Assembly: GCF_006345805.1 (NCBI RefSeq)
Contig: NC_043018.1
Coordinates: forward strand, 15,500,001 to 15,564,000
Source: Octopus sinensis
Taxonomy: Eukaryota
DNA length: 64,000 nt
Direction: 5' to 3'
Shown: piece by piece, positions 394 to 64,000 of the stretch
Layout of the letters: each line of letters opens with the position of its first letter
Numbering within the stretch: position 1 is the stretch's first letter
The notes under the pieces: generated by a model
The model's database searches: none
What the model saw: only the letters and a program-made list of their open reading frames with translations
What the model was told of the DNA's origin: nothing
Made by a program: the position numbers and the translations under genes

Positions 394-500
394 GGACTGA
401 TATAACAGATCTATTATTGGAAAATAAAGTTGCTCCTATGAAATGCGTTGTAGATGTGCCACAAGTCAATTTCACTTTTGATATTAACTACATACCACTG
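394..500 (+). CDS. VWDE: Exon 1 in window (R1 linker, [18 protein letters not shown]...YIPL)
   Basis: tttcag|GG acceptor, CTG|gtaagt donor; 107 nt, phase 1-0; homologous to exons at 23606 and 46529. Confidence 0.85.

Positions 501-64000: not shown

Follow-up and report, generated by a model that had tools for sequence, protein, structure and literature searches.

A Very Large Octopod Gene of Tandem Super-Modules with Predicted Lectin-Like Heads and VWDE-Type Cores

Gene Structure at the Locus

The window analyzed here, i.e., the whole stretch of 64,000 nucleotides (nt) from Octopus sinensis contig NC_043018.1 (assembly GCF_006345805.1, positions 15,500,001 to 15,564,000 of the forward strand), lies within a single, very large protein-coding gene of an octopod. 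It is AT-rich (about 36% G+C) and shows a eukaryotic organization, with short open segments between kilobase-scale spacers filled with repeats. When its stop-free translations are compared with one another, paralogous segments are found in collinear order, recurring about every 20–27 kb. The spliced model of these segments consists of 42 exons on the plus strand (394–64000) and comprises 8409 nt, that is, 2802 codons without a stop. Given that about 7% of random codons would be stops at 36% G+C, so long an open frame is not due to chance. Four successive super-modules share the frame: a partial R1 (6 exons, 963 nt), a complete R2 (15 exons, 3009 nt, 1003 amino acids (aa)), a complete R3 (16 exons, 3018 nt, 1006 aa), and a partial R4 (5 exons, 1419 nt) cut by the window end.

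An earlier note on this DNA, made from the letters alone, had already described 42 exons in one uninterrupted frame, the same lengths for R2 and R3, and the junction codons GCT, CAA, and TCG at 10824/12101, 31006/32479, and 57083/59307. All of these were reproduced in a model that was rebuilt independently of the earlier exon list, from paralogous stop-free segments and an enumeration of AG/GT sites. The self-comparison was limited to plus-strand matches below 56% identity, since otherwise the interspersed repeats of the introns swamp the paralogous exons. R3 segments were then searched back against the window, which placed every exon class in each repeat, and a phase-constrained scan recovered two R2 exons missed by similarity (14500–14592 and 23606–23709). 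Every internal exon boundary is flanked by AG and GT, with good polypyrimidine tracts and mostly GTAAGT-like donors. The exons and the inter-module introns are given below; where no other support is named, an exon was placed by paralogy and splice sites.

394–500 (+): R1, first visible exon, Vwde region after VWD; AG/GT; enters with 2 bases of a split codon; 107 nt, the length of its R3 paralogue 46529–46635 (45% aa identity)
2330–2485 (+): R1, Vwde region; 156 nt as in R2 and R3; paralogous matches
4591–4777 (+): R1, end of Vwde region and first half of EGF; EGF_Teneurin match in R1
6763–6953 (+): R1, second half of EGF and start of post-EGF beta-sandwich
8299–8505 (+): R1, post-EGF beta-sandwich
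10710–10824 (+): R1 last exon, C-terminal Cys-rich knot; 115 nt in R1, R2, and R3; phase 1 end; donor CAG/gtgaat
10825–12100 (+): phase-1 intron between R1 and R2 (junction codon GCT); 10 codons of donor read-through before a stop
12101–12754 (+): R2 exon 1, whole ConA-like/Laminin_G_3 head (predicted); single phase 1-1 exon
13966–14183 (+): R2 exon 2, Ig_VWDE part 1; Pfam Ig_VWDE E 1.9e-5, R2 aa 221–318
14500–14592 (+): R2 exon 3, Ig_VWDE part 2; 93 nt as in R3 and R4; phase-constrained search
16044–16454 (+): R2 exon 4, second beta domain, before VWD
16931–17068 (+): R2 exon 5, VWD start with TDPH at 16973–16984; one exon, split in R3, fused also in the Argonauta hians orthologue
18302–18493 (+): R2 exon 6, VWD; Pfam VWD E 3e-16, R2 aa 470–622
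18998–19097 (+): R2 exon 7, VWD
20046–20154 (+): R2 exon 8, VWD end; 109 nt as in R3
21424–21575 (+): R2 exon 9, Cys-rich start of Vwde region
23606–23709 (+): R2 exon 10, Vwde region; phase-constrained search; TDVTDF...KC motif common to R1 and R3
25646–25801 (+): R2 exon 11, Vwde region; 156 nt
26986–27169 (+): R2 exon 12, end of Vwde region and first half of EGF; paralogy and Pfam
27464–27657 (+): R2 exon 13, second half of EGF and beta-sandwich
29255–29443 (+): R2 exon 14, beta-sandwich
30892–31006 (+): R2 exon 15, C-terminal Cys knot; 115 nt; phase 1 end; donor ACC/gtaagt
31007–32478 (+): phase-1 intron between R2 and R3 (junction codon CAA); lacks a candidate start exon; 7 codons of donor read-through before a stop
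32479–33072 (+): R3 exon 1, ConA-like/Laminin_G_3 head (predicted); phase 1-1
34110–34339 (+): R3 exon 2, Ig_VWDE part 1; paralogy and Pfam
34721–34813 (+): R3 exon 3, Ig_VWDE part 2; 93 nt
35585–35986 (+): R3 exon 4, second beta domain
36968–37044 (+): R3 exon 5, VWD start with NDPH at 37013–37024
38209–38272 (+): R3 exon 6, VWD; preceding intron absent from R2; same split in the A. hians orthologue of R3
39780–39986 (+): R3 exon 7, VWD; Pfam VWD E 1.6e-15, R3 aa 452–613
40930–41041 (+): R3 exon 8, VWD
42624–42732 (+): R3 exon 9, VWD end
44724–44902 (+): R3 exon 10, Cys-rich start of Vwde region
46529–46635 (+): R3 exon 11, Vwde region
48036–48191 (+): R3 exon 12, Vwde region
48491–48671 (+): R3 exon 13, end of Vwde region and first half of EGF; paralogy and Pfam
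50781–50968 (+): R3 exon 14, second half of EGF and beta-sandwich
53954–54157 (+): R3 exon 15, beta-sandwich
56969–57083 (+): R3 exon 16, C-terminal Cys knot; 115 nt; phase 1 end; donor GAT/gtaagt
57084–59306 (+): phase-1 intron between R3 and R4 (junction codon TCG); lacks a candidate start exon; 17 codons of donor read-through before a stop
59307–59957 (+): R4 exon 1, ConA-like/Laminin_G_3 head (predicted); phase 1-1; sequence modeled with AlphaFold2
60819–61042 (+): R4 exon 2, Ig_VWDE part 1
61622–61714 (+): R4 exon 3, Ig_VWDE part 2; 93 nt
62375–62779 (+): R4 exon 4, second beta domain
63955–64000 (+): R4 exon 5, VWD start, cut by the window end; acceptor ttcag/GTG; ...VLCKSI precedes the expected NDPH

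Collinear alignment of the modules, with conserved cysteines, gives 31.5% identity for R1/R2 and 35.6% for R1/R3, and exon-level matches among the other modules lie between 25% and 50%. Intron positions and phases are common to all modules with one exception, an extra R3 intron (37045–38208) which interrupts what is the single exon 16931–17068 in R2.

The three inter-module introns measure 1276, 1472, and 2223 nt. They were scanned for an ATG followed by a hydrophobic stretch that could serve as a signal-peptide first exon for the next head, and no plausible one was found; separate paralogs with new signal-peptide starts before each LamG exon, which the earlier note had named as the alternative to its single frame through at least four super-modules, thus find no candidate in these spacers. 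The sole open reading frame (ORF) of this kind able to feed the exon at 12101 (11487–11535) has a poor donor and lies within an interspersed repeat. Reading through the donors at the module ends meets a stop within 7–17 codons. The head of each of R2, R3, and R4 is one exon with phase 1 at both ends, and the whole super-modules likewise begin and end in phase 1 at all three junctions; heads and super-modules alike thus form symmetrical 1-1 cassettes, a layout classically associated with exon shuffling and with skipping in frame. Comparison with the orthologous Argonauta hians locus and with relatives suggests that heads were gained or lost between cores, each as a cassette of one exon.

No second gene is evident in the window: a Pfam search of ten other long ORFs on both strands returned nothing credible, and an Rfam search of the whole window gave no match. 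The introns harbor several families of repeats. One has the size of a short interspersed nuclear element (SINE), lacks an Rfam match, and is present in at least 11 intronic copies in both orientations (5033–5158, 13744–13869, 23042–23158, 35038–35163, 40397–40495, 49846–49941, 51717–51836, 55806–55931, 57455–57580, 60239–60364, and 63326–63451). A second family occurs, e.g., at 1148–1399, 10881–11132, and 41499–41628, and a third, e.g., at 3770–3991, 9466–9669, 44351–44633, and 58614–58850. The last exon of R3 is flanked by two copies of one and the same repeat (55692–55984 and 57341–57632) which are 93–100% alike when translated and much younger than the others. A long (ATT/ATA)n microsatellite (12757–12996) begins immediately downstream of the R2 exon 1 donor and accounts for the poly-Ile into which the naive ORF 11755–12999 continues, and a long (TC)n microsatellite (42790–42990) follows just after R3 exon 9. 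In an R3 intron, a plus-strand open segment of 110 codons (51280–51609), rich in Arg, Lys, and Glu, with a Cys/His cluster at its end and no Pfam match, looks like the tail of a retroelement ORF.

Domain Composition of the Super-Module

As judged from profile overlap and structure prediction, the head of the module is a ConA-like/Laminin_G_3 lectin-like domain, which bears out the LamG-like assignment first made from the letters alone. A profile of the three head exons was used in an exhaustive HMMER search of 1.84 billion representative proteins and retrieved 326 protein matches at E ≤ 1e-3. It matches residues 45–244 of a Haliotis protein and 1286–1450 of an Acanthaster protein, in which the Pfam Laminin_G_3 domain occupies 92–223 and 1308–1451, so that the two sets of coordinates overlap. 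The AlphaFold2 model of the R4 head, built on an alignment of 40 sequences, is all-beta with a predicted local distance difference test score (pLDDT) of 95.4 and a predicted template modeling score (pTM) of 0.91. In a Foldseek search against the PDB, it matched ConA-like lectin jelly rolls with E values of 1e-7 to 1e-4 and template modeling scores of about 0.5–0.65, a similarity at the level of fold only; among the matches are the lectin-like subdomain of the binding region of clostridial neurotoxins, the lectin domain of a trans-sialidase, legume-lectin-type inhibitors, and NEL.

Behind the head, the order of the core is Ig_VWDE, a second beta domain, VWD, a Cys-rich and helical Vwde region, one teneurin-type EGF, a beta-sandwich, and a C-terminal Cys knot. 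The VWD and EGF domains that had been read from the sequence both pass the Pfam cut-offs. VWD (PF00094) scores 60.5 bits in R2 (E 3.1e-16) and 58.2 bits in R3 (E 1.6e-15) against a cut-off of 22.9, and EGF_Teneurin is found once per module with scores above or near its cut-off. The proposed Ig domain is weak but present: at the expected position before VWD, Ig_VWDE (PF25776) reaches 24.9 bits in R2 (E 1.9e-5) and 14.8 bits in R3, both below the cut-off of 28.1, and the model of a homologue from Owenia has a predicted beta-sandwich at the corresponding position. The Vwde region (PF26129) has precomputed matches in every strong homologue and in the orthologous models of A. hians. The complete modules contain 44–47 Cys and 13–15 N-glycosylation sequons each.

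For the last beta domain, the name IPT is tentative. A beta-sandwich is indeed predicted after the EGF in the Owenia model (equivalent residues 859–960), but no TIG/IPT match (PF01833) was found by Pfam in the modules of the window; the Aplysia homologue alone has a TIG match, below threshold (17.8 vs 20.9 bits). A profile of the post-EGF region gave no match among PDB sequences, and R3 searched against the same sequences gave EGF-only matches, to reelin.

A core profile was built from ten cores, including R2 and R3, and is 804 positions long. Its matches to vertebrate VWDE (E 2.3e-117 for an eel, 8.5e-109 for a bird) cover positions 3–461 and 516–802. Because this match spans nearly the whole profile, the repeat core corresponds to the complete N-terminal body of VWDE and not to VWD alone; by homology, the core of each super-module is thus a complete VWDE-type core, and the relationship to VWDE proposed earlier extends beyond the VWD domain. 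The same profile also retrieves proteins of Spiralia, among them single-core relatives, to which NCBI has given the name "VWDE-like". For the two vertebrate VWDE proteins retrieved, the precomputed Pfam lists include a D8C head but not LamG, in agreement with the earlier note's statement on vertebrate VWDE.

The fold of the core was taken from the single-core Owenia homologue, whose AlphaFold model is of moderate confidence (pLDDT 66 overall, 70–90 in most of the core). Its fold matches are to the D assemblies of MUC5AC, MUC2, MUC5B, VWF, and FCGBP, so that the suggested resemblance to these proteins holds at the level of fold and through a homologue. In the octopod modules, VWD carries at its start the motif (N/T)DPH(M/V)TTFDG, represented by TDPH in R2 and NDPH in R3. 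Across 16 relatives, little or no variation is seen in the N, D, P, and H columns.

The Orthologous Array of Argonauta hians and Relatives in Spiralia

The top match of the head profile is a 3038-aa hypothetical protein of Argonauta hians, and a 3759-aa neighbor belongs to the same cluster. Both derive from a locus on BAAFZT010000065.1 (about 3.25–3.35 Mb) with four consecutive models on the same strand, of 5052, 3759, 3038, and 6932 aa (18,781 aa in sum). R2–R4 map collinearly to this locus; almost every exon is matched, with 49–73% translated identity, and the introns are unmatched. At the level of modules, orthologues are 50–57% identical and paralogous modules 25–35%. A ratio of nonsynonymous to synonymous substitutions between orthologous modules was dropped, as synonymous sites are saturated at 50–57% aa identity. 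The exons of R2 straddle the gap between the first two A. hians models, and the second model, like the third, breaks off midway through VWD, the following model beginning at the next VWD exon. Because these breaks fall inside modules, the four models are pieces of one array, which, as predicted, is continuous over at least 18,781 residues. The models also skip at least one small exon, the equivalent of R3 exon 6 (38209–38272).

The pattern of a fused VWD exon in R2 and a split one in R3 is identical in the A. hians orthologues (in the local coordinates of stretch L002, the R2 equivalent is at 4316–4459 and those of R3 are at 16789–16869, 17295–17357, and from 17719 on). This shared presence and absence of an intron implies that the modules had become distinct before the two octopod lineages split, and the modules appear to be old paralogues kept as orthologues between these lineages. 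Four modules do stand in one frame in the window, but the "at least four" of the earlier note is a large underestimate in light of the A. hians locus: the octopod array probably continues far beyond the window on both sides, with more than 10 modules.

Outside the cephalopods, a first protein search with a rough R3 returned gastropod, bivalve, and annelid proteins with 25–33% identity from about module residue 205 to the end, i.e., over all but the head. The domain in front of the core varies: it is D8C in vertebrates, Owenia, Lineus, and Lingula, a C-type lectin in oysters, MAM in an Owenia paralogue, and Discoidin in Aplysia. Single-core members of about 1050–1350 aa are found in Owenia, Pecten, oysters, and Lineus. 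Two or more tandem cores are present in models from Bradybaena, Physella, and Aplysia, with headless cores in the first two and a signal peptide at the beginning of the Aplysia model. The Bradybaena similaris model (AP039584.1), a gene of 99 kb with a module period of about 48 kb, is truncated, since module exons (21–2955 and 115250–115357) occur beyond both its ends.

Several relatives combine heads and cores. The nemertean Tubulanus polymorphus protein (LOC141899868, XP_074642559; 2257 aa) reads signal peptide–EGF–head–core–head–core–transmembrane segment–tail, a complete membrane protein of two units. Bulinus truncatus KAH9523928 has four cores with heads before the last one or two only, and then another head and the beginning of a fifth core, thus four to five units. 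Both share the alternating head–core units of the octopod array, and both are uncharacterized predictions. Haliotis (LOC124272364), Sinanodonta, Ylistrum, and Lingula ("mucin-17") proteins contain the same blocks, with E values of 1e-34 to 1e-51 per domain for the head and 1e-82 to 1e-117 for the core, but differ in that several heads are clustered N-terminally, with Thr/Pro-rich linkers, before a single core, a transmembrane segment, and a tail; by the appearance of the sequence, discoidin-type and EGF repeats precede the heads.

Environmental and other sequence data add further members. Contig Ga0311393_0505825 of JGI data set 3300037841 (6491 nt, intronless, 38% G+C) encodes 2.4 consecutive headless cores in one frame, interrupted once by a stop codon at a position that is Glu in relatives (Y*V for YEV). 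It looks like complementary DNA (cDNA), because the genomic copies of the family have kilobase-scale introns, and is probably mollusc cDNA in an environmental data set; this suggests that modules are co-transcribed in the relative from which it came. In an ENA contig from another species, the order is the same as in the octopod locus, and an ENA/Logan fragment has 81% protein identity to the R4 head, with no match at the DNA megablast level.

On these comparisons, the fusion of a Laminin_G_3 head with a VWDE core is old and widespread in Spiralia, and unstudied. The earlier idea that LamG was fused to the VWDE core and the unit then multiplied holds for the structure, but not as a cephalopod invention, as both the fusion and tandem cores are also found in gastropods and a nemertean; what appears new in the octopod locus is a strict alternation of head and core on a very large scale. 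Whether the same architecture had been described before, as the earlier note had asked, receives a divided answer: related predicted proteins exist in other Spiralia, with similar proteins already in public databases as fragmented "hypothetical" or "uncharacterized" entries, but no description was found in the searched literature pairing VWDE with mollusc or octopus. Two candidate links were rejected. The "Laminin G3/Pif-like" protein of the argonaut eggcase differs in architecture (chitin-binding plus LamG3), and the planarian equinox resembles VWDE only in its EGF repeats.

Proposed Function, Rival Explanations, and Significance

Vertebrate VWDE is the nearest point of comparison. The octopod core of about 800 residues is homologous to its N-terminal region over nearly the full length; however, the vertebrate protein has one core behind its D8C head and then several further EGF-type matches, whereas in the window the core occurs at least four times, each with a Laminin_G_3 head and one EGF, and the next module follows directly in place of a C-terminal EGF run. 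VWDE itself is barely characterized, its only functional link being to the blastema and the regeneration of vertebrate appendages (PMC7390686). With FCGBP, the gel-forming mucins, and VWF, the octopod protein shares a very large predicted size, an assembly from many VWD-containing units, and an Asp-Pro-His at the place of the GDPH self-cleavage site (PMC8267560, PMC10880436). In contrast to FCGBP and the mucins, its unit is about 1000 rather than about 400 residues long and adds Ig, EGF, beta-sandwich, and lectin-like domains. Sfp1 and the Sfp1-like cohesive proteins of sea star, sea urchin, flatworm (ap1), and limpet (P-vulgata_3) are large secreted proteins with vWD, lectin-type, and EGF domains, which are auto-cleaved into disulfide-linked subunits and form the cohesive matrix of temporary adhesives (PMC9382459). 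They are built of vWD-C8-TIL units with galactose-binding lectin and discoidin domains and have no repeated VWDE core; the sequence relationship shown here is confined to the VWD domain.

The octopod product is probably an extracellular scaffold, since it is disulfide-rich, carries N-glycosylation sequons, and has relatives with signal peptides. In the proposed mechanism, the giant chain would be exported as a multivalent scaffold, its many lectin-like heads would bind glycans or matrix partners, and its many VWD assemblies would supply cohesion or oligomerization, as in FCGBP, the gel-forming mucins, and Sfp1 (PMC8267560, PMC9382459). The product would be secreted into mucus or an adhesive, or else borne on the apical cell surface. 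Multivalent binding of an adhesive or mucus type is put forward tentatively, by analogy with these systems. Autocatalytic Asp-Pro cleavage of FCGBP depends on both Asp and His of GDPH, and the Gly-Asp bond before the cleavage site is cis (PMC10880436). If the Asp-Pro-His at the first VWD strand cleaved as GDPH does, the chain would fall into disulfide-held pieces of about 1000 residues; such putative self-cleavage at (N/T)DPH is possible but somewhat doubtful. Taken as a whole, gene and proposed mechanism together, this account is reasonably likely to be the best explanation. Its furthest extension is doubtful and is offered as speculation: one extracellular polyprotein on the scale of titin, longer than 10,000 residues, with super-modules that would form a toolkit for splicing and self-cleavage and that might define an unrecognized VWDE-derived class of spiralian surface, mucus, or adhesive proteins.

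Several observations weigh against this account. Pfam gives no match on residues 1–200 of the R2, R3, and R4 heads even at E ≤ 5, and the ligand of the head cannot be inferred. R1–R4 contain no C8 or TIL Pfam domains, and the 2802 aa include no Ser/Thr/Pro-rich mucin stretch (S+T+P 19–24%); for these reasons, the octopod protein is not a mucin or an FCGBP in the strict sense. The Gly of GDPH is missing from its putative cleavage motif. Several of the relatives are membrane proteins, which weakens the reading as a secreted glue or mucus. The ends of the gene lie outside the window, and with them the signal peptide, the C-terminus (secreted or transmembrane), and the true number of modules. No O. 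sinensis protein was returned by any protein or profile search. The word-indexed protein search, however, never returned the Argonauta proteins either, although they are in the collection and exact Argonauta segments were part of the query alignment, so its lack of cephalopod matches is not evidence of absence. Finally, the public A. hians annotation breaks the array into four genes, and a block of about 42 kb there (R4-like to R7-like) is repeated in at least three nearly identical tandem copies, which may be a recent duplication or an assembly artefact.

That the window holds one gene with tandem modules is nonetheless very probable. Separate paralogous genes, each of about 1000 codons, lying in tandem and wrongly joined over intergenic DNA, are a highly unlikely alternative: tandem duplication is the obvious origin of such an array, single-core members of suitable length exist in other Spiralia, and the A. 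hians region is annotated as several genes, but no module ends in a stop, strong phase-1 donors meet phase-1 acceptors 1.3–2.2 kb further on, and the spacers have no plausible start or signal-peptide exon. Moreover, the A. hians models break within modules and not between them, and modules are joined both in predicted proteins of other species (RefSeq, GenBank) and in the cDNA-like contig. A decaying or non-expressed duplicated array, i.e., a pseudogene, would agree with introns full of repeats and with the failure to retrieve an annotated protein of this species; against 2802 open codons, 42 intact pairs of splice sites, conserved cysteines and motifs, and 50–70% conservation with A. hians confined to exons, it is scarcely credible.

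The two remaining rivals accept a single locus and concern its product. The array could end in a transmembrane helix and a short cytoplasmic tail, which would make it a membrane-anchored giant of the cell surface, for example a receptor or a protein of cell adhesion or the glycocalyx. Where the ends of relatives are complete, the proteins are of the type I membrane kind (Tubulanus, and Owenia with signal peptide–D8C–core–transmembrane segment and a C-terminal helix in its model), and the multi-head, single-core proteins of bivalves, abalone, and a brachiopod all end in a transmembrane segment and tail. The octopod C-terminus, however, is beyond view, the multi-core models of gastropods and octopods all stop inside a module, and the closest structural analogues with many VWD domains (FCGBP, Sfp1, mucins) are secreted. 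A membrane anchor is considered unlikely, though it is the leading alternative. It is more unlikely still that modules are skipped in frame to give a family of much smaller isoforms and no giant chain. Such use of cassettes would suit the 1-1 phase of all three module junctions and all three head exons, the occurrence of cores both with and without heads in relatives, and the several annotated isoforms of the Haliotis and Tubulanus homologues, but the intronless contig Ga0311393_0505825 reads straight across two module junctions. Each orthologous module is conserved between the octopods and thus under selection, a point compatible with both skipped modules and one giant chain.

VWDE is a conserved but almost unstudied extracellular protein of Bilateria, and in the octopod gene its whole core appears to be used as a repeat unit with exchangeable lectin-like heads. 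The product would be among the largest predicted extracellular proteins of molluscs. Annotations miss or fragment the family, as seen in the four models of Argonauta, the Bradybaena model cut at both ends, and the lack of any model returned for O. sinensis; gene counts and orthology tables for this VWDE-like family in spiralian genomes are thus unreliable. If expressed as read here, the protein would be a candidate for a structural constituent of the mucus, skin, suckers, or egg coverings of cephalopods. It would also provide a natural test of Asp-Pro self-cleavage in VWD domains without the Gly of GDPH, and a clean example of exon shuffling, with both domains and super-modules serving as phase 1-1 cassettes.

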